This document shows positions 1 to 62,784 of a stretch of 64,000 nt of DNA, one piece after another. Numbering within the stretch: the stretch's first letter is position 1; the number at the start of each line of letters is the position of its first letter. The DNA is taken from the NCBI GenBank assembly GCA_946965045.2, contig OX337235.1, positions 3,658,001-3,722,000 on the forward strand, given 5' to 3'. Below the pieces are notes generated by a model that saw only the letters and a program-made list of their open reading frames with translations, was not told where the DNA came from and did no database searches. Source of the stretch: Epithemia pelagica (Eukaryota > Protista > Bacillariophyta). A program made the translations under genes and the position numbers.

Positions 1-228
1 TACAAGAACGGAATTGGTAGTAGTACAATCGTTGTCGTATCCTCCCATTGCCACGACCGTCTGTCGCTTGGTGTTGTTGTTGTTGTTATCATCCGGATGA
101 TCAAGTACGACCGTAGCATGACGCTCTCGCCATCCACCCTCAAGAAGAGGCCATTCGGTTTCATTCCATCCTGGTTCTTGGTCGAAAAGGATAATGCCCG
201 ACTGCCAAGCTTGCTCTTTCAGTGTCAT
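1..228 (-). CDS. Kelch-propeller protein K0, 5' part (runs off the window start)
   Basis: Manual translation from the ATG at 228: MTLKEQAWQSGIILFDQEPGWNETEWPLLEGGWRERHATVVLDHPDDNNNNNTKRQTVVAMGGYDNDCTTTNSVLV, open to position 1 and colinear with K6. Its upstream region (230-360) resembles that of K6. Confidence 0.9.
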   Translation of the reverse strand, partial: MTLKEQAWQSGIILFDQEPGWNETEWPLLEGGWRERHATVVLDHPDDNNNNNTKRQTVVAMGGYDNDCTTTNSVLV

Positions 229-416
229 GGTTATGGCGCATTCACTCTCTTCAATCTTTAATAAATAGCTGGGAGAAAAAAGGAGCGCGTGGAAGCTTGA
301 GAGCCAAAAAAACTATCTGTCATGTGTACGGATCGCACATAGACTTCGTGACACAAATGACAACCAGCGATACAGCAATTATGGATGCAAGGTCTTCACA
401 TCTATAACCATACAGA

Positions 417-453
417 GGTCCATGGTCCATGGTCCATGGTCCATGGTCCATGG
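417..453. repeat. 7-bp tandem repeat (GGTCCAT)x5
   Basis: Five exact units read directly from the sequence. Confidence 0.95.
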
Positions 454-985
454 CGGATGGATGGAGCGCTCATTCGGATTTTCCCGTGAAGGACCGCACA
501 ATCCGGACTTGGTCGCGTTTCAGTCATTGACCATTGCGTTAGGAATGACACGTAGCAAGGGTAAAATATTATTGTCAAGATTGTCAAGGAATCGCGTACT
601 CATTACGGAACAAAACACCTCTATCGAAGCCAGGAAAGTCCTAGAATTGTCAACTAGCGTGCCTCCCAGTCCTTAATGGATGGGAGGTGTTTTCGTTTTC
701 TGCAGACTATCATGAAGGACTCTCGCATCATTGGTCAGATCGCTAGGAGTACGTGAAAATACAGACTGGCAAGTGTTTGATTTCGTATCACACAATAGAA
801 GATACATCGAACACTTCGCCAGGAGCTTCCGTTATGACAATCAGTACATCTCAAAGGATCGACAGCACCACTAACCAGCATATCTGTACTTTAATTGTAT
901 ATCATTTTTCTACGAAACGATCATTTCACACGGTCGGTCGATGGGTGTCTAGTGAAGTCGTTTTGAAACAGACTCGCTGCTCGAA

Positions 986-7843: not shown

Positions 7844-8142
7844 GGTTGTAATGATACTGATGAAATGACACTGTGCCAAGGAGTCAATCTGATTTATTCC
7901 TTCACCACGGTTGTGGTTTTTGCTTCCAATCTAGGAACTCGTGACACGCCTTGTTTCTCGCACTCTCCTTCTCACACACTTGCCCGTTGTTACTGGTTTC
8001 TTCTTCCTTTGCAAAGTGGATCTAAACACCCAACACCACCAACCAACAATCGAAGCAATCACCACACTAGTCAGATATGAATCTCTCGGTGCAATGGCTC
8101 CGCTCTCTCGGCCAAAAGAAAAAGCGTCATTCTTCCAATACT

Positions 8143-8187
8143 CCCAAAGGGTCTTTTGTGCGCGCCTGTCGGCAACTTCAAATCGAC
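8143..8187 (+). promoter_or_regulatory. Conserved kelch upstream motif, copy 1 (CCCAAAGGGTCTTTTGTGCGCGCCYGTCGGCAACTTCAAATCGAC)
   Basis: Near-identical 45-mer about 205-250 bp upstream of the K1 ATG; seven copies in the window. Regulatory function is inferred from position only. Confidence 0.6.
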
Positions 8188-8392
8188 ATGCCCAACCAAT
8201 TGTTGGGGGGCGTTGGGGTTTTACGAACAAAAAACTCTCGAAAGAAGGGTTCCCCCCCAAACTCCCCCATTTGGGACAACCGTCGGATTCAATCGCAGCG
8301 TGTATCAGTCATCATCTGTCATTCTCTCTCTCTCGATCTAGCAAACAGACAACACCGTCATAAAAGAATGCTTACCAAAGTGAATAGACACC

Positions 8393-9601
8393 ATGAGCAT
8401 GGTACTACAAGAACAAGCACGACAATCGGGGCTTTTCGTATCGGACGAGACAGCCGAATGGAATGAAGCCGACTGGCCTCGTCTTGAGTGTGATGGATGG
8501 CAACAATATCATGCTACGGTCGATCTGAATCATCCCGATATGGACGACACTGACAACACCAGGGGACAAACCGTCGTCCTGTTGGGCGGACATCAAAACC
8601 CAGGTACAACCAATTCCGTTCTTGTATTGAACTTGGCAGAGTCCAACAAGCAGTGGCGAAGAGGTCCACCCATGAACCAGAAACGTCAGAACCATGCCGC
8701 CGTTGTTTGCAATGGTGGAGTTTATGTAATGGGAGGACACTATGGAGCAGATTTGGATTGTATGGAACGAATTGACATCAATGATCTGCTGCAATCATCT
8801 TCGACACCGAGCAGCACACATGAGAGCCATTGGACGACATTAAACTGTCGATTGTTAACGAGGCGATGTGGATGCAGTGCTGTTGCGGTTCAAAATCGAT
8901 ATATTGTTGCAATGGGTGGATGGAACAGGTTGGAAGCCTTATCGTCGGTGGATATTATTGATACCAACCATCACACTGTAGTTGCAGGACCACCCATGAC
9001 TGTTCCCCGATCATATTGTGGCAGTGCGGTCATTGGCCACCGTATCTTTGTCGCTGGAGGCTGCACAACCAATACTTCGGTCGAATATTTGGACTTTACA
9101 ACGGCTAGTGAGAATGAGGAGAGTAACGACGACAGTTTGTCTACAGTCATTTCATTCTCGTCCGCTTGGAAGACAACTCATTCTGATTTGGTGCTTTCCC
9201 ATCCACGACATTCTTGTACAATGGTAGCCGTTGGATATTGCCTCGTGGTGGCGAGAGGAGAAAGTCCAACCGTACAAGTCTTGAATACGCACCGCTACCG
9301 TATGTGGAATCTCCCACCATTCGGAACTTACCGCCATTGCTCCAGTATGGTGACGTTTGCCAATCAAGTTGCCGTGATTGGTGAAAATCCGGATCCTACC
9401 TGTGCGACATTACCTCTAATGGACAAGAATACATGGTGCTTTTGTCGACTTTGTGAACAGCAATGCAACGAACGGTATCATTCTCTGGAAGGATCAGGTG
9501 CCCAAGATGTTCATGTAACGGGTAGTATGCGAAATGCCAATGTACGGCCCTGCTTGACCTCGACATTGCCTCGTAAACGAGCATGCCCAAATACTCCCTA
9601 G
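8393..9601 (+). CDS. Kelch-propeller-only protein K1 (402 aa, six blades)
   Basis: Six repeats with hydrophobic-GG motifs and R-x-x-H/C...W spacing (VVLLGG, VYVMGG, IVAMGG, IFVAGG, LVVARG, VAVIGE). No BTB or F-box domain visible. Confidence 0.92.
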   Translation: MSMVLQEQARQSGLFVSDETAEWNEADWPRLECDGWQQYHATVDLNHPDMDDTDNTRGQTVVLLGGHQNPGTTNSVLVLNLAESNKQWRRGPPMNQKRQNHAAVVCNGGVYVMGGHYGADLDCMERIDINDLLQSSSTPSSTHESHWTTLNCRLLTRRCGCSAVAVQNRYIVAMGGWNRLEALSSVDIIDTNHHTVVAGPPMTVPRSYCGSAVIGHRIFVAGGCTTNTSVEYLDFTTASENEESNDDSLSTVISFSSAWKTTHSDLVLSHPRHSCTMVAVGYCLVVARGESPTVQVLNTHRYRMWNLPPFGTYRHCSSMVTFANQVAVIGENPDPTCATLPLMDKNTWCFCRLCEQQCNERYHSLEGSGAQDVHVTGSMRNANVRPCLTSTLPRKRACPNTP

Positions 9602-10039
9602 AGGACATGCTGATCAAAGGAAGAATGAAACTGAGACATGTTGTTCTTTATCGAGTGACTTGTTTCCTACATTCAGTTGCAATCCTATAGTATAGATAAT
9701 GGTACCTGAAAAGTAGAATCAAAATGTTGCAAGATATGATCTGTGCTCTTTGTTGTCCGAGGATCGTTGAGGATTGCGAATTCTCCTGCTATAAAGACAA
9801 CATACAATTCTCTGACGAACCATCCTACAAAACATATTGAATGATCGCAAAAGAATAAGAAACGAATAGCAATACTTGTTATATGGAATCGCCGATCTAT
9901 ATCGTTGATTTTCCTTTGCTTGTTTTACGTTGTCTCGCAATGGGATGCGGTTCTGGCACCAAGGGCTTTCTTGAATCCGATACATGCGTTCATGGGCTGT
10001 TGGGTGTGCCTTGAAGGCACATGCTATGATCCTGCTTCC

Positions 10040-10490
10040 TCAGTCCGCACATGTTACTGGACGACGAGACCAAGCGGATAAGAAAGAGTAATGGTTAGTG
10101 AGCATATCTTGTGCAATGCTAGTATCATTGGAATTGTCAAGGGCGTGTTGTTTCTCGTGCTGATTGCGTCGGATGCCCCTGCTATTACGGTATAGTTGCT
10201 GGAAATGAACCTTTAATGAGGGCAATGTCACGACAAGTATGGGTCGTTATGGAACACTGTTTCTTTTACCCTCCTCCGGATGGGACAAACCTGTACATTC
10301 CTCCGTCGTTGAGGGTGATAAGGACTCGACGAGCAGGACCGAAGAATGGTTTGAAGTGGTAGGACTTGGATTCGGTGCGGTAAGGTCACAGGCCTTGGTC
10401 CAAGGATCGGTCGCAGTGTCCAGTGGCGATACTACTAATAGGAACCGACGGTGGTGTATTCCGAGCAGGAGAGGTTTCCAATCATGGAGA
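10040..10490 (-). pseudogene. Internally collapsed relic of the 21186-25265 gene
   Basis: The reverse complement matches separated pieces of that gene (about 23270-23475, 23835-23880, 24150-24170). Translation TATDPWTKAC..TAPNPSPT..NH compares with TATDPWTRACTAPNPSPTMLNH. Confidence 0.8.
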
Positions 10491-10918: not shown

Positions 10919-12121
10919 ATGAGCATAACATCACTGCAAGAACAAGCATGGCAGTCGGGCCTTGTTCTCTTGGACGAGACTGGAGAATGGAATGAAACCG
11001 ACTGGCCTCCTCTTGAGGGTGATGGATGGCGTTCGTATCATGCATCGGTCGTACTGAATCATGCTGATCAGGACAACACCAGGGGACAAACCGTCGTTCT
11101 GTTGGGTGGATATCACCAAGACGGACGTGTCACCAATTCCGTTCTTGTATTGAACTTTACAGAATCCAACAAGAAATGGCGAGAAGGGACACCCATGAAT
11201 AAGACACGTGTAGGACATGCCGCTGTTGTGTGCAACGGAGACGTCTACGTGATGGGAGGATACAATGGGTTTTATTTGGATTGTATCGAACGAATTGACG
11301 TCAACGATCTGCTGCAATCATCTTCGACAGAGAGCAGCACACATGAGAGCAATTGGACGACATTGAATTGTCGCTTATCCACGGCACGAAGCGCATGTTC
11401 TGCTGTTGCGGTTCACAATCGATATATTGTGGTAATGGGTGGATGGAACTGGCGGCAACACTGCTTATCGTCTGTTGATATTGTTGACACCCGCAATCAC
11501 ACTGTCATTGCAGGACCATCCCTTAATCATCCTCGACAAGTTTTTGCCAGTGCCGTCATTGGTCACCGTATCTTTGTCGTTGGAGGCTGCAGAACAAATA
11601 CTTCGGTGGAGTATTTGGAATTTACAAAGCCTTGCGACAATGAGGAGAGAAACGACGACACTTTGTCCACAGTCATTTCCTTCTCGTCCGCTTGGAGGAT
11701 TCATTCTGATTTGGTGCTTTCTGAGCCACGAACTGTTTGTGCAGCTGTCGCTGTGGGATCCTGTCTGGTTGTGGTGGGAGCATTCGGTCGAACCGAGCTA
11801 GTCTTGGATACACACCGCAACCGCGTGTGGAATCTCCCTAAGTTCCGAGATCGCCGCAGACCCGACAACATGGTGGCTCTTGCAGATCAAATTGTTGGGA
11901 TTGTTGGAGGGAAGATTACTGACTCTGGGACATTACCACTCATGGACAAGACTACATGGTGTTTTCGTAAGCTCTGTGATAAACCACTTAACGGATGGTA
12001 TCACTTTTTGGGAAGGATTCGGGAAGGATCGAGTAACCCCACTTTGACAGTAGCCTCTGAAAGTGCGACAGCCAATATCCGCCATGGTGACGAGAACGGC
12101 GGGAAGAAGGATCATAGTTAA
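10919..12121 (+). CDS. Kelch-propeller-only protein K2 (400 aa)
   Basis: Intact ORF paralogous to K1, six kelch blades, divergent C-terminal tail. Confidence 0.92.
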   Translation: MSITSLQEQAWQSGLVLLDETGEWNETDWPPLEGDGWRSYHASVVLNHADQDNTRGQTVVLLGGYHQDGRVTNSVLVLNFTESNKKWREGTPMNKTRVGHAAVVCNGDVYVMGGYNGFYLDCIERIDVNDLLQSSSTESSTHESNWTTLNCRLSTARSACSAVAVHNRYIVVMGGWNWRQHCLSSVDIVDTRNHTVIAGPSLNHPRQVFASAVIGHRIFVVGGCRTNTSVEYLEFTKPCDNEERNDDTLSTVISFSSAWRIHSDLVLSEPRTVCAAVAVGSCLVVVGAFGRTELVLDTHRNRVWNLPKFRDRRRPDNMVALADQIVGIVGGKITDSGTLPLMDKTTWCFRKLCDKPLNGWYHFLGRIREGSSNPTLTVASESATANIRHGDENGGKKDHS

Positions 12122-14251: not shown

Positions 14252-15481
14252 ATGAGCATGGCACTGAAAGAAAAAGCAGGTCAATCGGGCCTTGTCCTTT
14301 CGGACGAGAAATGGAATAATAACGACTTGCCGTCTCTTGAGGGTGGATGGCGTTGGCGCCATGCTTCTGTGGTACTGAATCATCCCGCTAAGGACAAGGA
14401 CATCAATAACATCAATAACAGCAAACAAACGGTCGTCGTGTTGGGAGGAATCAAACAAGGTTGGATTTTTACCAATTCCGTTCTTGTATTGAACTTAACA
14501 GAATCCAACAAGAAATGGCGAGAAGGGACACCCATGAATAAGGGTCGTGAAGGACCTACCGCTGTTGTGTGTAACGGAGGCGTCTACGTGATGGGAGGAG
14601 ACAATGGAGCACATTTGGATTGTATGGAACGAATTGACGTCAATGATCTGCTGCAATCATCTTCGACAGCGAGCAGCACACATGAGAGCAATTGGACGAC
14701 ATTGAATTGTCGCTTATCCACGGCACGAGGAGCATGTTCTGCTGTTGCGGTTCACAATCGATATATTGTGGTAATGGGTGGGTATCACAGGTCGTTAGAC
14801 TCGTCTCTTTCGTCAGTTGAGATTGTAGATACCAACCATCACACTGTCATTCCGGGACCATCCATGGCTGTTCCACGGGTATGGTTTGCCAGTGCCGTCA
14901 TTGGTCACCGTATCTTTGTCGTTGGAGGCAAAAACGGGTACGACGAACTTGACTCGGTAGAGTATTTGGAACTAACAACACATTGCGACAATGACGAGAC
15001 AACGAAGGAGACTACTTCTGCAGTCAGTTCCTTCTCGTCTACTTGGATAATTCATTCTGATTTGGTGCTTTCCAACCCACAAGCATATTGTGCAGCGGTT
15101 GCCCTGGGATCATGTCTTATTATTGCATCGGGAGGACTTTTCAGAGGAACCGTGCAAGTCTTGGATACACACCGCAACTGTGTATGGAATCTCCCAGCAT
15201 TCGGAAAGGGCCGTGAAGTGCGCAGTATGGTGACGTTTGCCAATCAAGTTGCCGTGATTGGTGGAAATCCAGATCCTACCTGTGCGACATTGCCACTAAT
15301 GGACAAGAATACATGGTGCTTTTGTCGACTTTGTGAACAGCCATGGAACGAACGGTATCATTCTCTGGAAGGATCAGGTTCCCAAGATGTTATTGTAACG
15401 GGTAGTATGCGAACTGACAATGAACGACCCTGCATGACCTCGACATTGCCTCGTAAACGAGCATTGCCAAATACTCCCTAG
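14252..15481 (+). CDS. Kelch-propeller-only protein K3 (409 aa)
   Basis: Intact paralogous ORF with six kelch blades. Confidence 0.92.
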   Translation: MSMALKEKAGQSGLVLSDEKWNNNDLPSLEGGWRWRHASVVLNHPAKDKDINNINNSKQTVVVLGGIKQGWIFTNSVLVLNLTESNKKWREGTPMNKGREGPTAVVCNGGVYVMGGDNGAHLDCMERIDVNDLLQSSSTASSTHESNWTTLNCRLSTARGACSAVAVHNRYIVVMGGYHRSLDSSLSSVEIVDTNHHTVIPGPSMAVPRVWFASAVIGHRIFVVGGKNGYDELDSVEYLELTTHCDNDETTKETTSAVSSFSSTWIIHSDLVLSNPQAYCAAVALGSCLIIASGGLFRGTVQVLDTHRNCVWNLPAFGKGREVRSMVTFANQVAVIGGNPDPTCATLPLMDKNTWCFCRLCEQPWNERYHSLEGSGSQDVIVTGSMRTDNERPCMTSTLPRKRALPNTP

Positions 15482-25895: not shown

Positions 25896-27122
25896 CTAGG
25901 GAGAATTTGGCCATGCTCGTTTACGAGGCAATGTTGAGGTCAAGCAGGGCCGTACATAGTCATTCCCCATACTACCCGTTACATTAACATCTTGGGAACC
26001 TGATCCTTCTAGAGAATGATACCGTTCGTTCCATGGCTGTCCACAAAGTCGACAAAAGCACCATGTATTCTTGTCCATTAATGGCAATGTCGCACAGGTA
26101 GGATCCGGATCTCCACCAATCACGGCAATTTGATTGGCAAACGTCACCATACTGCAGACTTCACGGAAATTTCCGAATGATGGGAGATTCCACACGCGGT
26201 TGCGAAGCGTATCCAAGACTTGCACGGTTCGACTGTGTGGTTCTGCCACCACCAGACAAGATCCTACGGAAGCCACTAAACAAAAACCTGGGTCGGAAAG
26301 CACCAAATCAGATAGAGTCGTCTTCCAAGCGGCCGAGAAGGAAATGACTGTAGACAAAGTGTCGTCGTTTCTCTCCTCATTGTCACAGCGCTTTGTAAAG
26401 TCCAAATACTCGACCAACGTATTGGTTGTGGAGCCTCCAATGACAAAGATGCGGTGGCCGACGACCGCACTGGCACACCATGATCGTGAAACAGTCATAC
26501 TTGGTCCAGCCGTGACAGTGTGGGTACTGGTATCAACAACATCCACATCCACCGACGATAAGTTGTCGTGCCCCCTGGTCGATCCGCCCATTACAACAAT
26601 GTATCTATTGTACACCGCAACAGCACGGCATCCACGTCGCCCCGTTGACAATCGACAGTCCAGTGTCGTCCACTTGGTCTCATGTGTGCTGTTGGATGTT
26701 GAAGAAAATGATTGTAGCAAATCATTCGCATCAATTCGTTCCATGCAATCTAACATTGGGCCAAAAAAGCCTCCACCGCCACCCATTACATAAACTCCAC
26801 CATTGCACACAACAGCGGCATGTGATTGACGACTCTGATTCATGGGCGGTCCTTCGCACCACAGCTTGTTTGGGTCTGCTAAATTCAATCCATGAACAGA
26901 TTTGGTCATATTGTACCGGTTGTCGTATCCACCCACGACGACGACCGTTTGTCCGTTGTTGCTGTTATTGATGTCCTTGTCCTTAGCGGGATGATTCAGT
27001 ACCACCGAAGCATGACGCCAACGCCATCCACCCTCAAGAGGAGGCAAGTCGGTTTCATTCCATTTCTCGTCCGAAAGGACAAGGCCCGATTGACGTGCTT
27101 TTTCTTTCAGTGCCATGCTCAT
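25896..27122 (-). CDS. Kelch-propeller-only protein K4 (408 aa)
   Basis: Intact paralogous ORF; N-terminus nearly identical to K3. Confidence 0.92.
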   Translation of the reverse strand: MSMALKEKARQSGLVLSDEKWNETDLPPLEGGWRWRHASVVLNHPAKDKDINNSNNGQTVVVVGGYDNRYNMTKSVHGLNLADPNKLWCEGPPMNQSRQSHAAVVCNGGVYVMGGGGGFFGPMLDCMERIDANDLLQSFSSTSNSTHETKWTTLDCRLSTGRRGCRAVAVYNRYIVVMGGSTRGHDNLSSVDVDVVDTSTHTVTAGPSMTVSRSWCASAVVGHRIFVIGGSTTNTLVEYLDFTKRCDNEERNDDTLSTVISFSAAWKTTLSDLVLSDPGFCLVASVGSCLVVAEPHSRTVQVLDTLRNRVWNLPSFGNFREVCSMVTFANQIAVIGGDPDPTCATLPLMDKNTWCFCRLCGQPWNERYHSLEGSGSQDVNVTGSMGNDYVRPCLTSTLPRKRAWPNSP

Positions 27123-29344: not shown

Positions 29345-30562
29345 CTAGATTTCATCGTTCCCTTTATCACCATGGCATCTATTTGGCCATGCTCGTTTAC
29401 GAGCCAATGGCGGGGTCAAGCAGGGTCGTACATGAACATTTCGGATACCCGATCCATTGGCATCTCGGGCACACGATCCTTCCCGAAATTGATATCGGTC
29501 GCTCCATGGTTGCTCACAGAGTCGACGAAAACACCATGTCTCCTTGTCTATTAGTGACAATGTCGCAAAGGTAGGATTCCGATGTCCACCAATCACAGCC
29601 ACTTGATTGGCACAAGTCACCATACTGCAGTCTTCATGGTGCCTCCGCAATGGCGTGAGATTCCACACGCAGTTGCGGTGCGTATCCAAGACTTCTACGG
29701 TTGGATTGTTTTCTCCTCCCGCCACAACCAGACAAGACCCAACGGCAACCACTGCACAACAATCTCGTGGGTTGGAAAGCACCAAACTAGAATGAGTCCT
29801 CCAAGTGGACGAGAAGGAAATGACTGGAGACAAAGTGTCGTCGTTTCTCTCCTCATTGTCACAAGGCTTTGTAAAGTCCAAATACTTTACTGAAGTATTG
29901 GTTGTGGAGCCTCCAACGACAAAGATGCGGTGGCCAATAACGGCACTGGCACAACATTCTCGAGGAAAATTCAAGGATGGCCCTTCAATGACAGTGTGGT
30001 TGCAGGTATCCATAATTTCAACCAACGACAATTTCCTCCAGTTCCATCCGCCCATTACAACAATGTATCGATTGTGCACCGAAACAGCACAACATCCAGA
30101 TCGTCCCCTTGATAATCGACAGTTTAATGTTGTCCAATGGCCATCATGTGTGCTGCTTGGTGTAAAGGATGACTGCAGCAAATCATTGGCATCGATCCGT
30201 TCGATAGATCGATAAAGTTCGGAATGGTCTCGTCCTCCCATTACATAGACACTTCCATTGCACACGACAGCGGCATGTTCTTCACGACCCTTATTCATTG
30301 ATGGCCCTTCTCGCCAGTGCTTGTTTAGGTCTGCCAAGTTCAATACAAGAACGGAATTGGTGACACGTCCGTCTTCGTGATAACCACCCAACAGGACGAC
30401 GGTTTGTCCCCTGGTGTTGTCCTGCTCAGCATGATTCAGTACGACCGATGCAGGAAACTCACGCCATCCACCCTTGAGAGGAGGCCAGTCGGTTTCATTC
30501 CATTTCTCGTCCGAAAGGACAAGCCCCGACTGCCATGCGTGTTCTTTCAGTGTCATGCTCAT
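29345..30562 (-). CDS. Kelch-propeller-only protein K5 (~405 aa)
   Basis: Intact ORF. The ATG at 30562 (MSMTLKEHAWQSG) aligns with the starts of the paralogs. Confidence 0.92.
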   Translation of the reverse strand: MSMTLKEHAWQSGLVLSDEKWNETDWPPLKGGWREFPASVVLNHAEQDNTRGQTVVLLGGYHEDGRVTNSVLVLNLADLNKHWREGPSMNKGREEHAAVVCNGSVYVMGGRDHSELYRSIERIDANDLLQSSFTPSSTHDGHWTTLNCRLSRGRSGCCAVSVHNRYIVVMGGWNWRKLSLVEIMDTCNHTVIEGPSLNFPRECCASAVIGHRIFVVGGSTTNTSVKYLDFTKPCDNEERNDDTLSPVISFSSTWRTHSSLVLSNPRDCCAVVAVGSCLVVAGGENNPTVEVLDTHRNCVWNLTPLRRHHEDCSMVTCANQVAVIGGHRNPTFATLSLIDKETWCFRRLCEQPWSDRYQFREGSCARDANGSGIRNVHVRPCLTPPLARKRAWPNRCHGDKGNDEI

Positions 30563-40697: not shown

Positions 40698-40762
40698 CTT
40701 GTGATGCTGTTCGTTGTTGTTCCAAACGGGGTACAGAGAGTTTTGGGGGGAAAGTTTCCCTC

Positions 40763-45320: not shown

Positions 45321-45355
45321 AGATGCCGACGGGCGCGCACAAAAGACCCTTTGGG
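45311..45355 (-). promoter_or_regulatory. Orphan copy 7 of the kelch upstream motif
   Basis: Same 45-mer in duplicated segment A3, pointing antisense into the ABC fragment. Confidence 0.55.
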
Positions 45356-49771: not shown

Positions 49772-50881
49772 TTACAAACCCATCTTCTCCCGAAAATGGT
49801 ACCATCCATTGGGCTGCTGTTCACAAAGTCGACGAAAACACCACGAATTCTTGTCCATTAGTGGGAATGTCGCACAGGTAGGATTGCCACTGCCACCAAT
49901 CACAGCAACTTGATTGACAACAGTCACCAAAGTGCAGCAAAGAGTGAGATTTCTGAAGGGTGGGAGATTCCATACACGGTTTCGGTGCGTATCCAGTACT
50001 TCCACGGTTGAATTGCGACGTCCTCCCGCCACCACCAGACTGGATCCCACGGCAACCACTGCACAAGAATTTCGTGGGTTGGAAAGCACCAAATCAGAAT
50101 GAGTGATCCAAGTGGACCGGCAGGAAATGACTGTAGACAAACTGTCGTCGTTTCTCTCCTCATTGTGACAAGGCTTTGTAAAGTCCCAATACTCCACTGA
50201 AGTATTTGTTGTGGAGCCTCCAACGACAAAGATGCGGTGACCAATGACCGCACTGGCACACCATGATCGTGGACCGGCCAAAGAGGGTCCCGGAATGAAA
50301 GTGTGGTTGATGGTATCAATAATATCAACCGACCTGTTGTCCCTGTTGCATCCACCCATTACCACAATGTATCGATTGTGCACCGCAACAGCACAACATC
50401 CATATGTTCCTGTTGATAATCGACAATTCAACATCGTCCAAGGGCTCGCGTATGTACTGGTGCTTGTCGCTAACGATGATTGCAGTAAATCATTGGCATC
50501 AATTCGTTCCATGCAATCCAACCTTGAAGGTCCATTGCGTCCTCCCATCGTGTAGACGCCTCCATTGCACACAACAGCGGCATGTCCCCGACGACAGTTA
50601 TTCATGGGTGGCCCTTCTCGCCACTGCTTGTCTGTTTGTGCTAAATTCAATACAAGAACGGAATTGGTAGTATTCCAATCGTTGTCGTATCCTCCCAGCA
50701 CGACCACGGTTTGTCCTTTGTTGTTGTTGTTGTTGTTGCTATCAATAGGATGATCAAGAACGACCGATGCATGAGCGCAACGCCATCCCCCCTCAAGAGA
50801 AGGCCACTCGGTTTCATTCCATCCTGGTTCTTCGTCGGAAAGGACAAGGCCTGACTGCCATGCTTGCTCTTTCAGTGTCAT
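49772..50881 (-). CDS. Kelch-propeller-only protein K6 (~369 aa)
   Basis: ATG at 50881 (MTLKEQAWQSG) aligns with the paralogs; six blades; short C-terminal tail. Confidence 0.9.
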   Translation of the reverse strand: MTLKEQAWQSGLVLSDEEPGWNETEWPSLEGGWRCAHASVVLDHPIDSNNNNNNKGQTVVVLGGYDNDWNTTNSVLVLNLAQTDKQWREGPPMNNCRRGHAAVVCNGGVYTMGGRNGPSRLDCMERIDANDLLQSSLATSTSTYASPWTMLNCRLSTGTYGCCAVAVHNRYIVVMGGCNRDNRSVDIIDTINHTFIPGPSLAGPRSWCASAVIGHRIFVVGGSTTNTSVEYWDFTKPCHNEERNDDSLSTVISCRSTWITHSDLVLSNPRNSCAVVAVGSSLVVAGGRRNSTVEVLDTHRNRVWNLPPFRNLTLCCTLVTVVNQVAVIGGSGNPTCATFPLMDKNSWCFRRLCEQQPNGWYHFREKMGL

Positions 50882-52270: not shown

Positions 52271-52647
52271 ACTCCGTCATTCGAGACATGCCGACCTTGA
52301 CGTGTGGAACCTGCCCTAATGTATTATATCGTCCATAATATGGCTCGGATTCGTCCTCGTGTTCGTGCTCGTCGTACTCTCGCCGTTGTCTGTCGCATCA
52401 CTGGATCAAACTCTCAAGTGTACACACACGACCGGATCTACCAAGAATAAGCCACATTCATTGTCGCTGTGGCTCTGGACGAAACAAGAACAATAACAGC
52501 ATCACATTCGACAATACTACAACACGAAACATAAACATACAAAATATGGAACGGCAAGCACGACGAAGCAACCAAGGTTGCAACCCGCGTAGGTAGCTCT
52601 GTCACTCCGAGAATTTGCAGAGGACAGTAGTGCCATGGCGGACGCTA

Positions 52648-55187
52648 TCATGGCTTTAGAAGGAAATTCATGTGCGGTCATATGCAATGTAACATGCAAG
52701 GAGTTGCTCTTTGATCTCCGTCTACTGCAATGTCTTTTGGCAGAGCAAGCCACTCTAGTCTAGGTATAGTGATTGAAAAGCATTTCATTAACTTACATGA
52801 TTCACAACGTAATTAAGTATTGGCACGATTCCCTCTTTGGCACGAGAGTATAATGGCCACCTGAGATAGTTTCCGGGCTCATGGTCATGCAACCTGTTGT
52901 ACATTTCAATTGATATCCTCCCCTCTGTCAAAATCACAATAATCTAAGTCCTCAATCGTTTAAGAGTCGACGACGAGATGGTGCAGGATGTAGCATTGAC
53001 GTCTCCGTTCCCCAATCTTTCATGACACTGATACCGTACATTCCGAGGCTGCTCACAGAGTCGACGGAAACACCACGTATTCCTGTCCACTAATGATAAT
53101 GTCGCACAGGAAGGATTGTCCATCCCCCCTATCAGGGCAACTTGATTGCCAACAGTCACCATACTGCCGTCTTCAAGCCGATTTTCTAATGGTGGGAGAT
53201 TCCACATGTGGTTGCGCTTCGTATCCAAGACTTCCATGGTTCGATTGTTTTCCGCCACCACCAGACAAGATCCAACGGCAACCACTGCACAAAAATATCG
53301 TGGGTTGGAAAGTACCAGATCAGAGTGAGTCGTCCAGCCAGACAAGAAGGAAATGGATGTAGACAGAGTGTCCTTTCTTTCCTTATTGTAACTGTGCTTT
53401 GCAAAGTCCAAATACTCCACCGAGTCAAGATTGCCGTCATCGTTGCAGCCTCCAACAACAAAGATGCGGTGACCAATGACCGCACTGGCACACCATACTC
53501 GTGGAACAGTCATGCCTGGTCCCGCAATCACAGTATGGTTGCTGGTGTCAATAATATCCACCGAAGACAATCTCTGCCGGTTGCGTCCACTCATTACCAC
53601 GATATACCGATTGTGAACCGCAACAGCACAACATCCCCATCGTTCCGTGGATAACCTAGTAGTCAATGTCGTCCAATGATTCTTTTTTGAGGTGCTTGAT
53701 GTTGTTAAAGATGATTGTACCAAATCAATAACATCAATCCGCTCGATACAATCCAACAACGAACAGTAGTTATTGCGTCCTCCCATCACGTAGATGCCTC
53801 CATTACACACAACAGCAGCATGTCTTTCACGTTTCTGGTTCATAGGCGGTCCTTCTCGCCACTGCTTGTATGATTCTGCCAAATTCAATAACAAAACAGA
53901 CTTGACAAAGCCTTTGTGGTGTTGGTTTCCTCCCAACACAACGACCGTCTGTCCATTGTTGTTGTTGTCCTGATCGGGATGATCCAGTACGACTGACGCA
54001 TGATCGTCACGCCATCCTCCCAGAAGCGGAGGCCAATCGGTTTCATTCCATTCTGCTCTCTCGTCCAAAAGGACAAGGCCCGACTGCCATGCTTGCTCTT
54101 TCAGTGTCAAGCTCATGGTTCCAAACGGTGAATGCAGAATTTATGAGGATCAAGACACACTGTATTGTGACAGGTTCGTGATTTGGGTGCTCCTGTGATG
54201 CGGATGGATGCGGACTGGAAGCACGACTGACTTGACGAAATGGATGGATCGAAACACGAGCGATCGTCGCGAGACAGATATGGACCGCAATAGTCCCACA
54301 AAATGAAGAAAGCCACATATATTCTTGAATTCGGAATACCACCGTGGAGGTGTTTGGATATCGAACACAAACTCCTCACGGCGAGACTGACCACCGCGTT
54401 CTGGTATCCTCACACGAGACTCTCGCAGAACAAAAGAATGTTCGAATGTGATGCGATTCGGTTCCGTCATCAGTTTTTGTGGTGGTTGCGCATGCGACTT
54501 GTCGAGTACTGTAGTAGTGTCGTGTTCGAACCATGCCATACAGGCTCCACAGTCTGTCAGTCTGTCTGGTTGTTGGTTCCCAACCAAAATACCAAGCGAC
54601 AACACTGCACAGGTCGGGGGAGAGGAAGTTGGTGGATTTGGACAGGACACGTGTGTCGGTCGTAGTTGGGAGATTCTCGACGTGCGTTTGTTCCATGTAC
54701 TCGTGTGCAATGCCTCGGAGTCCAGCTGGACGGGTGTGCCGGTCGTTCTCTCGTGGTACTGTCGCCCACGTCCGTCGTTTCCTTGCCCGGAACGTTTCGT
54801 CATGGGTCATGTTCGATTCGTACGGTCCGTCGTGGTGCCTCCCAGCGAACATGCAATGCACATGACAAAGAAGCACCGACAGGTAGCGACGGAGAAGCGT
54901 CCAACGTCCGGGAAGAATCACGGATGCGGTTGTACGATTGTGCTGCTGCAGTTGCGCCATTGGCATGCCATGTGATGATGATAATGGGTGGTGGTGGATC
55001 CGATTGGAACTGGAGAGATGTCGAGAGGGGGACGACCACATTCGATGAGACTGTCCATTTCGTCACGGAACGTCCACAGTGTCCATTGGTCGAACCACAC
55101 AATGTGGGAGAAGGCACCCGACGAGGAGCATGCCAAGGATGACAATGACGAAGAAGATGAATTTCGGAGTACGGTGTCAACCTCAAA
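52648..55187 (-). repeat. Left arm of a second inverted duplication (K7 plus flanks), partner 60271-62784
   Basis: High reverse-complement identity across K7/K8, their 3' flanks and about 1 kb of upstream sequence. Confidence 0.9.
52944..54116 (-). CDS. Kelch-propeller-only protein K7 (390 aa)
   Basis: Close paralog of K8. A 1-bp difference after KRLRT gives an early TAG and removes about 22 C-terminal residues. Confidence 0.9.
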   Translation of the reverse strand: MSLTLKEQAWQSGLVLLDERAEWNETDWPPLLGGWRDDHASVVLDHPDQDNNNNGQTVVVLGGNQHHKGFVKSVLLLNLAESYKQWREGPPMNQKRERHAAVVCNGGIYVMGGRNNYCSLLDCIERIDVIDLVQSSLTTSSTSKKNHWTTLTTRLSTERWGCCAVAVHNRYIVVMSGRNRQRLSSVDIIDTSNHTVIAGPGMTVPRVWCASAVIGHRIFVVGGCNDDGNLDSVEYLDFAKHSYNKERKDTLSTSISFLSGWTTHSDLVLSNPRYFCAVVAVGSCLVVAENNRTMEVLDTKRNHMWNLPPLENRLEDGSMVTVGNQVALIGGMDNPSCATLSLVDRNTWCFRRLCEQPRNVRYQCHERLGNGDVNATSCTISSSTLKRLRT

Positions 55188-56178: not shown

Positions 56179-59100
56179 TTACTTACTGTACGCCGGAGCT
56201 CGTTCTTGGACGGGAGGACTTTGCCGCGCGGCATGGTGCTCTTCGGCCGTCACGAGACGTCGAATGTCACTCAATTCAATCTTGTCCAAGACTTCCCCAT
56301 CGTCAAATTTTACGGTATACAACCATGTTCCTCGACGGTAATAGTACTGTTTCGTGTCGGGATGAGTCCGATCGAACTGGGCGGCAATCACGACACACTC
56401 TTCAAACTCCCACTCCTCTTGCTGCTCGTCATTTTCAATCCGCACTTGAATGGTTTGTCCCACCAAGGAGTGTGGAACAAAGCGTTGCACCTGGCCCACT
56501 TTGTATTCCTCAAAATCGTTTTGCACGTCCATGCGGTAATAGGCATCGGCATAGGCATCGGTAACGACCCCCATGTACCAATACTTGCCTTGTCGCACTT
56601 GGGCCAGCGAACCAGAGACCAACCAGGCATTTCTCGACGGTTCTCGAATGGGTGTTTGGAAGGGGTTGGACATGCGAGCCACCATGGAAACTGGAGAGGG
56701 GGATATGGCATGACGACGAAGGTCCAAGGCAATCTCCTCTTGTTCCGGAAGCATGGGCATAACAAACCGCCGTTGTCCAACCGTCCAGGTGGTTTTCTGG
56801 GACGACGCCAAGGTTTCTTCCCACGTTTTATCCAAGGCGGAACCATCGGGGGTTGCCTGCAACAGATCCGGCACTGGACGAGCCAGGGATGCCGACGATT
56901 TTGACGGCGATTTGGCCGACACTAATACCGATGGTTTGGTGACGAGATGTTGCGTCGAGGCTTGATCCGCGGTTTCCAGGGCGGTTGTCCAGAGCCGTTC
57001 TTGCAGTTGCAACAAGGTGGGCACCGCATGGCGATAGGCCAGGGCCGTGGTGCGATAAATGCCAAACCGCCATTCCGACAACAGGGGTTCCATGGTTTCG
57101 CGCATCAACCGATGCAAAATGGGATACACGGCACGACTCACAAGTCGATGCGACAAGAATTCCAAGGCTTGAGTGTGACTCTGCAACATCCATCGACCAC
57201 CCCGTCCTTGTTGCAAAAAGCGTGCCGGTTCGCCCGTGTCTTGGCCATGACGCAGTGTCTGATAGATCCAATGCGCCACGGCATCCCGGGCCATCCACAC
57301 CATGGCCGAAGGATTCTTCTGTTCCACGCTACCACGGTTGGCCACAAAGGCTTGGACGTGTCGATTCAATTGCCGATTGCCATAATGTCCCTGATCAATC
57401 AAATCCTTGACAATGCCCAAATAGTGCGAGCCACCCAAGCGATACTCGAGCAAGACATCGGAGCGGGTGGGATAGGTGGACCATCCCTGGCTGACAATAT
57501 CGGGAAAGTTGGCCTCATCGTTCAAGACAGATGTGTACAAGCGGTGTTGACGAATGTTGCGAGCCCAGAGGGTACCATCCACATGATGCCGTGCCGCGGA
57601 CCAACCGGCATAGACCACCCCAGCCATGGCGCTGGCCTGAAGCATACCGCGTTGCCATCCACGCAGTGGTTTCGGGTTGTTGTTGGTGGTGGTGTTCGTA
57701 TTGCCACTTCCTCCCACGAGCGTATAGACGAGGACATGGAGGACCAGGGCACTGGCGGCGCACATACTGGTGAATTGATGCACTCGTTTCAGCGTGGCTT
57801 GAAAGTAAAACATCCAAGCCAAGTCATGGTCCAATTCCTCCTCGGTCAAGTGGTGGGGATGCAACCATGACGGGACAAAGGGCAAGAGTTTGCCCTCTTC
57901 TTGCTTTTCTTCCAAATAATCGGCATCGTAATAATTGGCATCGTTGGTAATGCGAAAGGCCAAATTGGCCAAATAATCGTACCCCCATTCGGCCGGGTTG
58001 GGTTTGGCATTGTACAAGCCGTAGGATCGCAACCAATTCCACGGAAATTGCATATAGGTCGAGGCCTGTTGCAAATCCTTCCACGTGTGGCCCTGTCATT
58101 ACGGTAGAGAAACGACCACACAATATGGACATTCAAGACACGGGTCAGGGCACGGGGTGACACAATGAGAGAGAGTCCACGTCGAACCACTCCTACTACT
58201 ACTTACCCACGAATCATGTCGCAACGACATGGTGGCACCTTGAGAAATTTGTCGCGATTCGGCGTGATGGTGTCGGGGTTGCGGTCCAAGGGTCAAAATG
58301 AGCATGACGCGATCCAAACCATCGGGATCCTGGTGGGCCGATCCGCGATGAAAGGAATTCATATTCATGAGCAGGGCATCGCCGGCATTCCAATAGCCCG
58401 TGGCCGGATCCACCATTGGGTAGCCATGGGTTTCGCACACGCTGCCCGTATCGCCGCGACTGCAATAGTGCAATCCGGGACAAATGCCCGTGGCACCCAT
58501 GCGGGCCGTCGTATTTTGCAATTGGACAAACAAGCTCCACAAGGGATCAAAGGAGCGTCCATATTGCAAGGCCGACGTATGGGGGATGATATCGTCGTGA
58601 TAATGTTGATCCGTCGCCCCGTACGTGGCCGTAATGGCTGTCAATTCCACCAAGGCGGGATCCGGTCCCATGACTTGTGTCACCAATTCGCTGTCATGAT
58701 ATAATAGAATCATACAAACGAACCATGGAATGATCGAGGACGACGACGACGACAAAAGAGAACAAACCAAGAAAGCCATGCACGTAGTAGCCATGACCAA
58801 ACAAGACACGCCAGCAAGCAAAAGCAAGAGAGAGAGCCACGCGAAAGTGAGAGACGATTGTCAATCTCCGAGGCACCACACGAATCCGCAAATACGACAC
58901 ACGATCGTCTCCACACAAGGACGACAACGACCACAGGCATGCACGCCGACACACACACACAGGAACGCGACACGTTCTGGATACTACGATACGTACGTGA
59001 CTTGGGGATGATTGGTCAATTCCATGACAGCTTGGGCGACAATGGGCACGGTCGTGTCCAATCCAAAACTGTACCGGTGATCATTTTCCAAGACAAAGTA

Positions 59101-59622
59101 GGTTTTGCCAATTTCGGCATTGCGTTGTCGAATATACTGCCGCAAGCCTTGCATGGTGTTTGGTGACAGCGTGGATCGGACCACACTAAAGCCGTGCTGG
59201 ATATGATGGTGATAATAGGACTGGTCCGGATCCATGCTGCTGGAACGGTCGTTCGTCGTTGTTGGCATTGGCATTGGTGTGGGCGGCGGCGGCAAGTACA
59301 AGTCGGCCGGATTGTGGGTGGACAGTTCGTCGGCGGTACAGGTGCGAGCATAATAGGTACATTCGTCCGCTTGTCGATCTTCGGTCCACCAGGCATCCCG
59401 CACTTGGGGTTCCCAATACTGTGTGGCGACATGATGCATCCACGCCGTGACGGCCACTGCCACCAAACTGCCCCACACAACGACAGTGAAAACTCGCCAG
59501 GCCAACCAGGTAGCGGTAGTCGTAGTGGTGGTGGTGGTGGTTTTGTGACTGTTGTGGTTGGAAGGAGACGCAGTCGTCGTTGTGGCCGTGGCGGCGGTTG
59601 GAGCCGACGGTTCGACCAACAT
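56179..59622 (-). CDS. ~1007-aa PhyH-like 2OG-Fe(II) dioxygenase with TM helices, DUF6824-like and tandem Tudor-like domains; exons 59622-58997, 58690-58207, 58092-56179
   Basis: Two GT-AG introns (GTACGT..ACAG, GTAAGT..ACAG) join three ORFs in frame (3024 nt). Metal-ligand motifs QHYHDD and FHRG; SLFVQLQNTTARMGATGICPG. Additional 5' exons cannot be excluded. Confidence 0.78.
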
Positions 59623-60270
59623 ATGCTCTTGTTCTGCTTCGTTTTGGAACGACTTGTCAGTGTGGTTCTCGCGTTCACGTTACAAGGCTCGTCGTTGTCG
59701 TCGTCGTCGTCTCTCTCTCTCTTCTCTTGGTTGGTGGAGGAACGATCCAATATTCGGATTGGACAAATCACACAATGGCTCTCCTTCTTCACACAGACCG
59801 ACCTTCCAACACAACAGTCAAAAATTGACGAGACACACACACACCCAAAAAAACATATTGGGGCCCGCCCCACAAAAAGGGCCACTCCGTCGTCGTATCT
59901 GTATTCTATATGGACGCGCGTGCGCTCTACATTCCAACGCTCGGCGCAAAGAATCTCGAGCGTCTCAATCACGACATTTTTAAGACCATACACTACTCCG
60001 TATCCAGTTCGATACCGCTCCATTGTGGTTCGCGTTGTGGTGCGGAGAGTTCGCATTGTGTTTGGCAAGAGCCGACCACACAAGACTCTGTTGCGGGACT
60101 CATGTCGGTCGAGATTCTTCGGGTTTTCGGTTTTTCGGCCAGGTTGGATACTCATCTCGTACTCGTCCTCTATTATTCGAGATTGGAGATGCGGTCCATT
60201 TCTCATCAGCTCTTGACTCTCGCTCTCTCCTGTCGGGGGACGGCCACCCTTGTTCCTTCGAATGGCGCCT

Positions 60271-62784
60271 TTTGAGGTTGACACCTTTTACTCTGGAATT
60301 CTTCTTCCTTGTCGTCGTCATTGTCGTCATCCTTGTCATGCTCCTCGTCGAATGCCTCCTCCCCGCATTGTGTGGTTCGACCAATGGACACTGTGGACGT
60401 TCCGTGACAATAGGGACTGTCTCTCTCATGTGTGGTCGTCCCCCTCTAGAGAGATCTCTCCAGTTCCAATCGGATCCACCACCCATTGTCATTATCAAAT
60501 GCATTGCGAAACTACAACAGCACAATCGTACAACCGCATCCGGGATTCTTCCATGACGTTGGACGCTTGTTCGTCGCTAAATGTCGGTGCTTCTTGTCAC
60601 AAAACGACACTTGCGCGCGCGCAAGGGTCCAGTGTGTCCTGTGCATTGCATGTTCGCTGGGGGGCACCACGACGGACCGTACGAATCGGACATAAACGTT
60701 CCGGGCAAGGAAACGGACGTGAGCGACAGTACCACGAGAGAACGACCGTCCAGCTGGACTCCGAGGCATGGCACACGAGTACATGGAACGTCGAGAATCT
60801 CCCAACTACGACCGACACACGTGTCCTGTCCAAATCCACTCCCCCGACCTGTGCCGTGTTGTCGCTTGGTAGTTTCGTTGGGAAACTCAACAACAAGACA
60901 GACTGTGAGGCCTTTCTGGCATGGTTCGAACACGACACTACTACAGTACTCGACAAGTCGCATGCGCAACCACCACAAACGGATGACGGAACCGAATCGC
61001 ATCAATTCGAACATTCTTTTGGTTTGGGAGTCGTGTGAGGCTACCAGAACGTGGTTGTCAGTCTCGCCGTGAGGAGTTTGTTTTCGATATCCAAACACCT
61101 CCACGGTGGTATTCCGAATTCATAGAATATAAGTGGTTTTGTGGGACTGTTGCGGTCCATATCTGTCTCGCGACGATCGCTCGTGTTTCGATCCATCCAT
61201 TTCGTCAAGTCAGTCGTGCTTCCAGTCCGCATCACAGGAGCAAACAAATCACGAACCTGTCACAAAACTACAGTGTCGATCCTCATAAATTCTGCAGTCA
61301 CCGTTTGGAACCATGAGCTTGACACTGAAAGAGCAAGCATGGCAGTCGGGCCTTGTCCTTTTGGACGAGAGAGCAGAATGGAATGAAACCGATTGGCCTC
61401 CGCTTCTGGGAGGATGGCGTGGCGATCATGCGTCAGTCGTACTGGATCATCCCGATCAGGACAACAACAACAATGGACAGACGGTCGTGGTGTTGGGAGG
61501 AAGACAACCACACAAAGGCTTTGTCAACTCTGTTTTGTTATTGAACTTGGCAGAATCATACAAGCAGTGGCGAGAAGGACCGCCTTTGAACCAGGAACGT
61601 GAAAGACATGCGGCTGTTGTGTGTAATGGAGGCATCTACGTGATGGGAGGACTCAATAACTTCTGTTCGTTGTTGGATTGTATCGAGCGGATTGATGTTA
61701 TTGATTTGGCACAATCATCTTTAACAACATCAAGCACCTCAAAAAAGAATCATTGGACGACATTGACTACTAGGTTATCAACGGAACAATGGGGATGTTG
61801 TGCCGTTGCGGTTCACAATCGGTATATCGTGGTAATGGGTGGACGCAACCGGCAGAGATTGTCTTCAGTGGATATTATTGACACCAGCAACCATACTGTG
61901 ATTGCGGGACCAGGCATGACTGTTCCACGAGTATGGTGTGCCAGTGCGGTCATTGGTCACCGCATCTTTGTTGTTGGAGGCTTCAACGAGGACGGCAAAC
62001 TTGACTCGGTGGAGTATTTGGACTTTGCAAAGCCCTGCTACAATGAGGAGAGAAACGGCTCTCTGTCTACATTCATTTCCTCCTTGTCTGGCTGGACGAC
62101 TCACTCTGATCTGGTACTTTCCAACCCACGATATTCTTGTGCAGTGGTTGCCGTTGGATCTTGTCTGGTGGTGACGGAAAACAATCGAACCGTGCAAGTC
62201 CTGGATACGAAGCGCAACCGCGTGTGGAATCTCCCACCATTAGAAAATCGCCATGACGACGGCAGTATGGTGACTGTTGGCAATCAAGTTGCCCTGATAG
62301 GGGGAATGGACAATCCTTCCTGTGCGACATATTCATTAGTCGACAGGAATACGTGGTGTTTTCGTCGACTCTGTGAGCAGCCTCGGAATGTACGGTATCA
62401 GTGTCATGAAAGATTGGGGAACGGAGACGTCAATACTACATCCTGCACCATCTCGTCGTCGACTCTTAAACGATTGAGGACCCTAGATTATCCTGATTGT
62501 GACCAAGGGGAGGATGACACTGGAAATGTACAACAGGTTGCACGACCATGAGCCCGGAAACTATCTCAGGTGGTCATTATACTCTCGTACAAAAGAGGGG
62601 ATCGTGCCAATACTTAATTACGTTGTGAATCATGTAAGTTAATGAAATACTTTTCAATCTCTATACCTAGACTGGAGTGGCTTGCTCTGCCGGAAAAGAC
62701 ATTACAGTAGACGGAGATCAAAGAGCAACTCCTTGCATGTTACATTGCATATGACCGCACATGAATAACCTTCTAAAGCCATGA
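60271..62784 (+). repeat. Right arm of the second inverted duplication (K8 plus flanks)
   Basis: Reverse-complement match to 52648-55187. Confidence 0.9.
61313..62551 (+). CDS. Kelch-propeller-only protein K8 (412 aa)
   Basis: Intact ORF with six kelch blades. Confidence 0.92.
   Translation: MSLTLKEQAWQSGLVLLDERAEWNETDWPPLLGGWRGDHASVVLDHPDQDNNNNGQTVVVLGGRQPHKGFVNSVLLLNLAESYKQWREGPPLNQERERHAAVVCNGGIYVMGGLNNFCSLLDCIERIDVIDLAQSSLTTSSTSKKNHWTTLTTRLSTEQWGCCAVAVHNRYIVVMGGRNRQRLSSVDIIDTSNHTVIAGPGMTVPRVWCASAVIGHRIFVVGGFNEDGKLDSVEYLDFAKPCYNEERNGSLSTFISSLSGWTTHSDLVLSNPRYSCAVVAVGSCLVVTENNRTVQVLDTKRNRVWNLPPLENRHDDGSMVTVGNQVALIGGMDNPSCATYSLVDRNTWCFRRLCEQPRNVRYQCHERLGNGDVNTTSCTISSSTLKRLRTLDYPDCDQGEDDTGNVQQVARP

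Follow-up and report, generated by a model that had tools for sequence, protein, structure and literature searches.

Little is understood of the molecules by which diatoms recognize viruses, parasites, bacteria and mates, although these interactions probably influence bloom dynamics. Here we ask what is encoded by a cluster of Kelch genes in the diatom Epithemia pelagica that occupies 64,000 nucleotides of contig OX337235.1 (positions 3658001-3722000; the contig is denoted C8 below, and this whole stretch the window), 90-154 kb from the right end of the contig at 3,812,027 bp. A first-pass annotation of the sequence had described a nine-member array of Kelch-only propellers with hypervariable binding-face loops, and had proposed that it forms a diversifying recognition repertoire. 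We find that nine copies are indeed present, comprising eight complete intronless genes (K1-K8), each an uninterrupted open reading frame (ORF) of 369-412 amino acids, and one partial copy (K0), but that the window is an interspersed cluster with copies in both orientations (- + + + - - - - + from K0 to K8) and that the family to which it belongs is far larger. We think it reasonably probable that these are functional intronless genes for stand-alone six-blade propellers, which make up a diversified ligand-binding set within a very large family that is so far known from this organism alone. The ligands would most likely be proteins or peptides.

The Kelch genes, their fold and their relatives

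The eight complete window copies score 49-100 bits against the Pfam Kelch_1 model, for which the gathering cut-off is 20.1, and the Pfam KLHDC2/KLHL20/DRC7 and FKB95 Kelch models match above their cut-offs as well. Protein identity among the window copies is 59-70%, with the exception of K7/K8 at 92%, and all eight complete copies are open despite pairwise synonymous divergences (dS) of 0.33-0.79 (0.056 for K7/K8). The translation of K0 contains the N-terminal motif of the family, RERH and GG-YDNDCTT. Each loop string quoted in the first-pass annotation, from blade 1 and from the segments following the GG doublets of blades 1 and 2, is found in the translations in the stated order, and the blade-1 series RERH/QQYH/RSYH/RWRH/RWRH/REFP/RCAH/RDDH/RGDH holds copy by copy. 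Residues are numbered after K8, which is also the copy that was modelled.

The AlphaFold2 model of K8, for which 78 family sequences were aligned (mean predicted local distance difference test score, pLDDT, of 77), shows six four-stranded blades with 23 strands between residues 24 and 345, mostly at pLDDT above 85, in which the closing strand of the propeller is supplied by the N-terminal segment. Insertions in the C-D loops are modelled as low-confidence residues 140-144 and as helices at 243-256, and the C-terminal tail (345-412) is disordered in the model. Foldseek places this model nearest to the six-blade Kelch domains of NS1-BP, KLHL3, KLHL12, KLHL20 and KEAP1 and to the designed SAKe proteins, with a probability of 1.00, TM scores normalised to the target of 0.74-0.81 and an identity of 15-22%; features from the ESM Atlas return generic Kelch clusters only. 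Residues G62, G63, G112, G113, G177, G223, W86 and W148 are invariant, as are D344, W348, C349, F350 and L353 after blade 6, and only about 35 residues precede blade 1. Kelch is the only domain type that Pfam detects in these proteins, with no NACHT/NB-ARC nucleotide-binding domain. They have neither a signal peptide nor a hydrophobic N-terminus, the longest hydrophobic run being 3-4 residues, and a basic cluster lies within the last 45 residues in 26 of 36 copies; taken with the domain content, these features suggest that the propellers are cytosolic or nuclear.

A six-frame search of the 60.5-Mb genome returns 943 first-look candidates which, at ~1.2 kb each, would take up an estimated 2% or so of the genome. 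Every one of the 101 candidates that were scored has E<1e-149, and most lie near the ends of contigs C6, C8, C9, C11, C13, C17, C18 and C20. From these we sampled copies at 30 loci and in nine 10-kb stretches, with the C8 cluster sampled and not complete; 36 of the 38 near-full-length copies obtained are open and two are broken, and there are several short fragments besides. Among 5.8 billion clusters searched by protein sequence, and 1.84 billion representatives searched exhaustively by profile, the family occurs in only one assembly, ERZ21939226 in ENA, where members usually occur as two near-identical sequences on two contigs, which we read as haplotypes; beyond this assembly only generic giant Kelch-repeat proteins are matched. 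Pattern scans of JGI metagenomes and IMG/VR give no relative, and this absence is weak evidence because the scans depend on two or three family-specific peptides.

Over 50 deeper lineages also come to light in the profile search; their identity to K8 is 31-52%, and they have in common with it an N-terminal 'EQAxLSGL...WPPLxGG' motif. Two divergent members, P0135 and P0140 (~44-47% identical to K8), are located on ENA contigs ctg1320l (L041) and ctg1330l (L042), and both stand singly among ordinary genes, with PAE and ABC genes around one and GH72, VWA and pantothenate-kinase-type genes around the other. It is possible that P0135 and P0140 are ancestral, non-array lineages, and these two cases suggest that the arrays represent a single, hyper-expanded branch within an older family.

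The relationships among the copies point to local tandem birth and to exchange between chromosome ends, since K1-K6 form one clade with two copies just left of the window (99% support) and K7/K8 group in the tree with copies on C20 and C17. Copies also exchange patches by gene conversion or unequal recombination. K3 and K4 are mosaic, with 94-96% DNA identity at both ends and 65-70% in the middle, and so is K2, which is 96% identical at the nucleotide level to K3 at residues 122-162 and 95% identical to K5 at residues 41-80; replacing the single tree by five segment trees raises the M0 log-likelihood (lnL) by ~1,520. Elsewhere in the genome, the copies at C13:500862 (L012) and C8:3788373 (L038) differ by one nucleotide over the whole coding sequence, a sign that one chromosome region received the gene from another very recently, by transfer or duplication.

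Selection on the scaffold and on the loops

Selection was analysed in a codon alignment of 35 distinct intact copies (eight from the window, two from just left of it and 25 from elsewhere), from which columns with more than 30% gaps were dropped, using a GY94-F3x4 likelihood engine that evaluates each site on the maximum-likelihood tree over a 15 x 21 grid of rate pairs, synonymous (alpha) by nonsynonymous (beta). The median pairwise dS is 0.52, and the comparison is therefore not saturated; the ratio of nonsynonymous to synonymous rates (omega, or dN/dS) is 0.35-0.7 gene-wide and 0.61 globally. With structural classes set in advance from the DSSP string of the K8 model, we find that the strands are constrained despite the divergence of the copies (omega 0.41, p 1.7e-47), as opposed to values of 1.00 for the D-A loops and 1.20 for the B-C loops, with the A-B loops at 0.50 and the C-D loops at 0.58. 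Purifying selection maintains both scaffold and reading frame, and these are real constrained genes, not decaying repeats.

A mixture that permits beta>alpha outperforms one restricted to beta<=alpha, with twice the log-likelihood difference (2dlnL) at 83.8; four null simulations on the same tree under the restricted model give 0.4, 1.3, 4.1 and 7.7. Site-wise likelihood-ratio tests at q<0.1 identify 13 positive sites, at K8 residues 26, 38, 66, 76, 98, 119, 120, 207, 290, 292, 315, 333 and 371, together with 82 negative sites. The strongest positive sites by posterior rate are 38, 66, 98, 119, 120, 207, 290, 292 and 333, and a core consisting of 38, 66, 98, 114, 120, 207, 290, 292, 315, 316, 333 and 336 is kept with five segment-specific trees.

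For cross-validation we took the 13 sites that test positive (p<0.05) in the 25 copies located away from the window and its immediate surroundings. At these sites the eight window copies have alpha 0.2 and beta 2.6 (p 1e-9), and beta is again 2.6 when alpha is fixed at 1 (p 7.5e-11). A set of 25 sites chosen by posterior from the non-window copies yields alpha 0.35 and beta 2.1 in the window copies (p 1.1e-9), with omega 0.5 at the remaining sites. In a tree-free check of the 13 cross-validation sites, the Nei-Gojobori dN is 1.04 versus a dS of 0.53 for the rest of the gene, and in all 28 window pairs the proportion of nonsynonymous differences (pN) at the sites is higher than the proportion of synonymous differences (pS) elsewhere in the gene.

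By blade topology, the D-A and B-C loops form one face of a Kelch propeller, and we refer to these as the top loops and to the A-B and C-D loops as the bottom loops. All of the 26 most variable propeller positions in the 78-protein alignment fall in D-A or B-C loops and none in A-B or C-D loops, with blades 1-6 each contributing (37/38, 64/70, 95/97, 114/116/117/118/120, 158/160 and 180/182 in the first half; 207, 224/229, 274, 290/292, 311/313/315 and 332/333 in the second). In each blade it is one to three residues just before strand A, following a conserved Arg, and just after the GG doublet that vary. Ser, Gly, Gln, Arg, Asp and Glu are favoured at the hot positions, and 76 of the 78 proteins have a distinct combination at ten hot sites. 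The positively selected sites are enriched in the top loops relative to the bottom loops (Fisher p 0.015) and relative to everything else (p 6e-5). Between K7 and K8, the top loops, which are 24% of residues, hold 14 of 32 amino-acid differences and 3 of 12 synonymous ones. Synonymous rates are not raised in the top loops, with alpha at 1.0 in both classes versus 0.85-1.2 elsewhere, and pS at the cross-validated hot codons is 0.157 versus 0.38 for the rest of the gene, which argues against a mutational hot spot. By topology, the top face and its hot positions correspond to the face and the positions at which peptide ligands are bound in the KEAP1-Nrf2 and KLHL3-WNK4 complexes, and the variable ring is a putative binding site.

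These results bear out the earlier proposal of a birth-and-death family under diversifying selection, which is reflected in the local clade, in broken and truncated copies and in a site class with dN/dS>1 that is focused on the D-A and B-C loops. The receptor role that it also put forward, in recognition of pathogens, self/non-self or substrates, is a putative one. The variable sites are not evenly spread over the structure, as would be expected if that proposal were wrong, but are concentrated in these loops, with the class above 1 giving the 2dlnL of 83.8.

Possible functions and rival explanations

Taken together, the data show that new copies are born through local and segmental duplication in chromosome-end regions and that patches pass between copies through gene conversion or unequal recombination. 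Purifying selection holds the reading frame, the beta-sheet scaffold and the N-terminal closing segment, and positive selection drives apart one to three residues in each D-A and B-C loop of all six blades, such that nearly every copy has its own combination of hot residues. The putative targets would be diverse or fast-changing, and might be proteins of pathogens, symbionts or mating partners, or changing cellular substrates. A partner or compartment downstream, common to all the propellers, may be reached through their conserved N-terminal motif and basic C-terminal tail. A narrower and distinctly more tentative proposal is that diatoms, or this lineage at least, have in the family an undescribed germline-encoded repertoire for innate immunity or allorecognition, made up of hundreds of Kelch propellers and analogous to nucleotide-binding leucine-rich-repeat receptors (NLR), variable lymphocyte receptors (VLR) and fungal NWD proteins. 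Such propellers would sense molecules of viruses, parasites, bacteria or mating partners and signal via separate partners, for which TIR-domain genes are candidates because TIR_2 matches lie near arrays more often than expected by chance elsewhere in the genome.

Several points weigh against a diversified binding set. One of the four null simulations produces 21 false sites at a posterior of at least 0.9; we therefore do not rely on posteriors, and our conclusions rest on the likelihood-ratio tests, the cross-validation and the tree-free comparison. With empirical-Bayes calls unstable in this way, the individual weaker positive sites are uncertain, and recombination and loop indels can inflate site tests. 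The placement of the variable residues on the top face derives from Kelch topology and the DSSP string of the model, not from three-dimensional distances. No F-box, BTB or BACK domain is found in the eight copies (Pfam, E up to 0.01), nor any signalling domain; a motif test finds the BC-box pattern [STP]LxxxCxxx[AILV] in one of 36 copies, where it is not C-terminal, and no TIR or leucine-rich repeat (LRR) gene adjoins the Kelch copies in the window. Finally, four sequencing runs, all from one study and none recorded as RNA, cover genes and spacers alike, with uneven depth in two of them (X3 and X4), and contigs cannot show RNA.

In a special case of the binding-repertoire reading, the propellers would be substrate receptors of ubiquitin ligases, like plant F-box-Kelch or KLHDC2-type proteins: the variable face would pick substrates, and a common ligase core would be bound through the conserved N-terminal motif or the conserved helix that follows blade 6. 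We consider this rather unlikely. Neither an F-box nor BTB/BACK nor a SOCS/BC-box is found, the BC-box pattern occurs within the last 80 residues in one of 120 family proteins (motif test), and the post-propeller helix is modelled at pLDDT below 50. The architecture itself, a six-blade Kelch protein of ~400 amino acids with a short conserved helix and tail, resembles that of Kelch-only receptors of cullin-RING ligases (CRL); the KLHDC2/KLHL20/DRC7 and FKB95 matches point the same way, as do the nearest solved folds, which are Kelch domains of CUL3 adaptors, and the retention of the N-terminal motif even in the 31-52% identical members and of the invariant residues after blade 6. Large adaptor families with fast turnover are also known from plants and nematodes (PMC3719486, PMC8665587).

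That the loops are simply unconstrained, and the family ballooned by genomic drift at recombination-prone ends, is improbable, and in its pure form we count it as rejected: the likelihood gain from beta>alpha is more than ten times the largest null value, independently chosen sites have the beta of 2.6 given above for window copies with alpha fixed at 1, and dN at the hot sites is twice the gene-wide dS, a relation seen in all 28 pairs. Gene-wide omega is nonetheless high, and the D-A and B-C classes taken whole reach only 1.0-1.2, but bottom-face loops of similar exposure stay at 0.5-0.58. Drift draws further support from the false posterior calls in one of four null simulations, from the many families and fragments that chromosome ends collect (the ABC pieces, copia and the 631-amino-acid family described below) and from the case made for genomic drift in plant F-box genes (PMC3030570). 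Transposition as the source of the numbers, with the genes as mobile-element cargo or a selfish family without host function, would fit the hundreds of intronless copies in both orientations, the nearby copia element and the PiggyBac-type transposase gene close by in what is probably the other haplotype. We regard it as very improbable and count it as rejected: close relatives conserve only the coding sequence plus flanks of ~0.3 kb (5') and ~0.5 kb (3'), distant ones conserve nothing beyond the coding sequence, neighbouring copies are closest relatives, as tandem duplication predicts, and purifying selection on the scaffold is strong. Comparisons of the gene units, which included no search aimed at such features, show no terminal repeat or transposase gene common to them. 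Least probable of all, and likewise counted as rejected, is targeted hypermutation of loop codons in place of selection; the variability is strongly concentrated in a few codons of each blade, as this mechanism would have it, but neither alpha in the two top-loop classes nor pS at the hot codons is elevated, and the window has neither a deaminase nor a reverse transcriptase/template pair linked to the copies.

With the diversified binding set as our preferred reading, the closest parallel in mode of evolution is found in the fungal HNWD/NWD genes (Podospora het-d, het-e and het-r; PMC1805685, PMC2873952), which likewise keep a conserved beta-propeller scaffold, place a few interaction-face positions per repeat under positive diversifying selection, exchange sequence between paralogues and form a lineage-specific multigene repertoire of intracellular proteins. 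This likeness is one of evolutionary mode, not of membership. In HNWD proteins, WD40 repeats are fused to NACHT and HET effector domains in an NLR-like arrangement, there are about ten per genome, and variation arises mostly by shuffling of repeat units within genes, whereas the diatom proteins are Kelch, stand alone without a signalling domain, are encoded by hundreds of genes and vary between whole genes. Plant F-box-Kelch (FBK) proteins and expanded ligase adaptors (PMC3719486, PMC3030570) also use Kelch propellers as target-recognition modules in large lineage-specific families with fast turnover by tandem duplication, and the FKB95 match recalls them; unlike these, the diatom family has no detectable ligase-docking domain, has several-fold more copies and is concentrated at chromosome ends. 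KEAP1/KLHL-type Kelch domains (2FLU, 4CH9, 6TTK) have the same six-blade fold at 15-21% identity, but are single-copy, conserved and attached to BTB-BACK.

The closest algal case is that of the Cyanidiales red algae, unicellular algae in which Kelch-trefoil and Kelch-hint genes have multiplied in subtelomeres to 12-24 copies (PMC9812998). These differ in encoding galactose-oxidase-type Kelch domains that are fused to trefoil or hint domains via Thr/Pro/Ala linkers and carry signal peptides, and the genes are >80% identical with low variation, with no diversifying selection on a binding face reported (PMC9812998). The first-pass annotation knew of no such system in diatoms, in keeping with the full text of open-access papers and preprints, where none appears among those pairing Kelch with diatom terms. 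Repeat scaffolds with a variable face and exchange between paralogues are known as a principle; the variant seen here is new in that the Kelch propeller stands alone and that a protist has hundreds of them. Hundreds of intact genes that bear the textbook marks of adaptive diversification on a putative binding face constitute a testable candidate recognition system and, if this is true, a rare natural use of the Kelch propeller as a variable binding scaffold, which is of interest for protein engineering because designed SAKe Kelch scaffolds are among the closest structures. The family also shows chromosome ends in the role of nurseries for variable genes in a photosynthetic protist, as in Plasmodium, trypanosomes and yeasts.

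Flanking sequences and neighbouring genes

Coordinates of the Kelch copies, of the flanks shown for K1 and of other features are collected in Table 1.

Table 1. Features of the window, in window coordinates (aa, amino acids)
Feature	Position	Strand	Description	Evidence
K0	1..228	-	N-terminal 76 codons of a Kelch copy; ATG at 228; continues past the left window edge	translation, tblastn match
Shared 5' flank	8083..8392	+	5' flank of the local subfamily, shown for K1	blastn of gene units, upstream sequences
K1	8393..9601	+	stand-alone six-blade Kelch gene, 402 aa, intact	ORF; Pfam Kelch_1 84 bits
Shared 3' flank	9602..10045	+	3' flank, shown for K1	blastn
K2	10919..12121	+	Kelch gene, 400 aa, intact	ORF, Pfam
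K3	14252..15481	+	Kelch gene, 409 aa, intact	ORF, Pfam
1,426-aa ORF	16177-20457	-	no Pfam family	
1,396-aa ORF	21075-25265	+	no Pfam family	
K4	25896..27122	-	Kelch gene, 408 aa, intact	ORF, Pfam
K5	29345..30562	-	Kelch gene, 405 aa from the ATG at 30562 homologous to the start of other copies, intact	ORF, Pfam
ABC_membrane	39731-40859	+	partial copy, split over two frames	
ABC_membrane	44235-45320	+	partial copy	
K6	49772..50881	-	Kelch gene, 369 aa from the homologous ATG at 50881, short C-terminal tail, intact	ORF, Pfam
K7	52944..54116	-	Kelch gene, 390 aa, intact; inverted partner of K8	ORF, Pfam
631-aa ORF	56179-58074	-	between the inverted pair K7/K8; no Pfam family; faint Tudor-like and membrane-segment matches	
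K8	61313..62551	+	Kelch gene, 412 aa, intact	ORF, Pfam

Among K1-K5, ~100-300 bp of recognisable upstream sequence is kept, including a conserved block ~250-210 bp before the ATG, after which come G/C-rich runs, a motif of the CAGTCATC type and a short upstream ATG; this flank is probably the promoter and 5' untranslated region (UTR). A different 5' flank, ending in TTGGAACC before the ATG, is found in K7/K8 and in 12-14 of 36 sampled copies on other chromosomes, and there are therefore at least two promoter types. Downstream, ~450-500 bp are conserved among K1, K4 and K5, and from the conservation of both flanks the duplicated unit measures ~2.0-2.2 kb. In distant copies the similarity runs only from the start codon to about residue 367, and the flanks are unalignable.

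A counterpart of the right part of the window is present in the ENA assembly as a 21-kb piece (L040; ERZ21939226 ctg1194l:78463-99635), which is the best and only close match to window positions 49-64 kb, at 90-97% identity, and has no better match anywhere in the genome. It differs from the window in an inverted central 5-kb segment, an extra Kelch copy and a PiggyBac-type DDE_Tnp_1_7 transposase gene. Its K7/K8-like gene has 25 residue differences from K7, 13 of them in top loops, and the Kelch gene at the position following K8 is only ~80% identical to its genome counterpart. This piece is probably a second haplotype of the K6-K8 region that has diverged strongly (by 6-7%); a possible alternative is a paralogous segment missing from the assembly.

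Interspersed with the Kelch copies are a 1,732-amino-acid Gln-rich ORF, two ORFs of ~1,400 amino acids, a copia element, two ABC pieces, a RING ORF and a DUF6824 ORF. The two ORFs of ~1,400 amino acids are divergently oriented, with a strong strand compositional skew, and encode low-complexity, acidic, Ser/Thr-rich products that have no similarity to each other. The two ABC pieces look like gene fragments duplicated within the chromosome-end region, and no ABC ATPase domain is present in the single downstream ORF scanned (45351-45899). The copia gag/integrase and reverse transcriptase regions are in separate overlapping ORFs. The first-pass annotation had set the open Kelch copies against broken SnoaL, RING, ABC, LRR and copia neighbours; this stands for the eight open copies and for the ABC and copia pieces, the former partial and in one case frame-split, but the RING ORF is open, and no SnoaL or LRR domain occurs in any ORF of at least 110 amino acids outside the Kelch genes.

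In the genome at large, six of 23 TIR_2 matches have one of the 101 scored copies no more than 15 kb away (C6:227 kb, C13:3.077 Mb, C17:3.058 Mb, C17:3.160 Mb, C11:3.401 Mb and C20:39 kb), where ~1.2 are expected (p ~9e-4), and none of the TIR_2 matches is on the window's end of C8. A common subtelomeric location could explain this association. A separate cluster of seven TIR_2 matches is located at C10:2.84-2.89 Mb.

The 631-amino-acid ORF between K7 and K8 is a second family or a mobile-element relic that is distributed together with the Kelch arrays. Its DNA has paralogues on C10 (84%) and C16 (81%), and short pieces of it, at 70-80% identity, are found in dozens of places in the Kelch-rich ends of C6, C9, C13 and C17.

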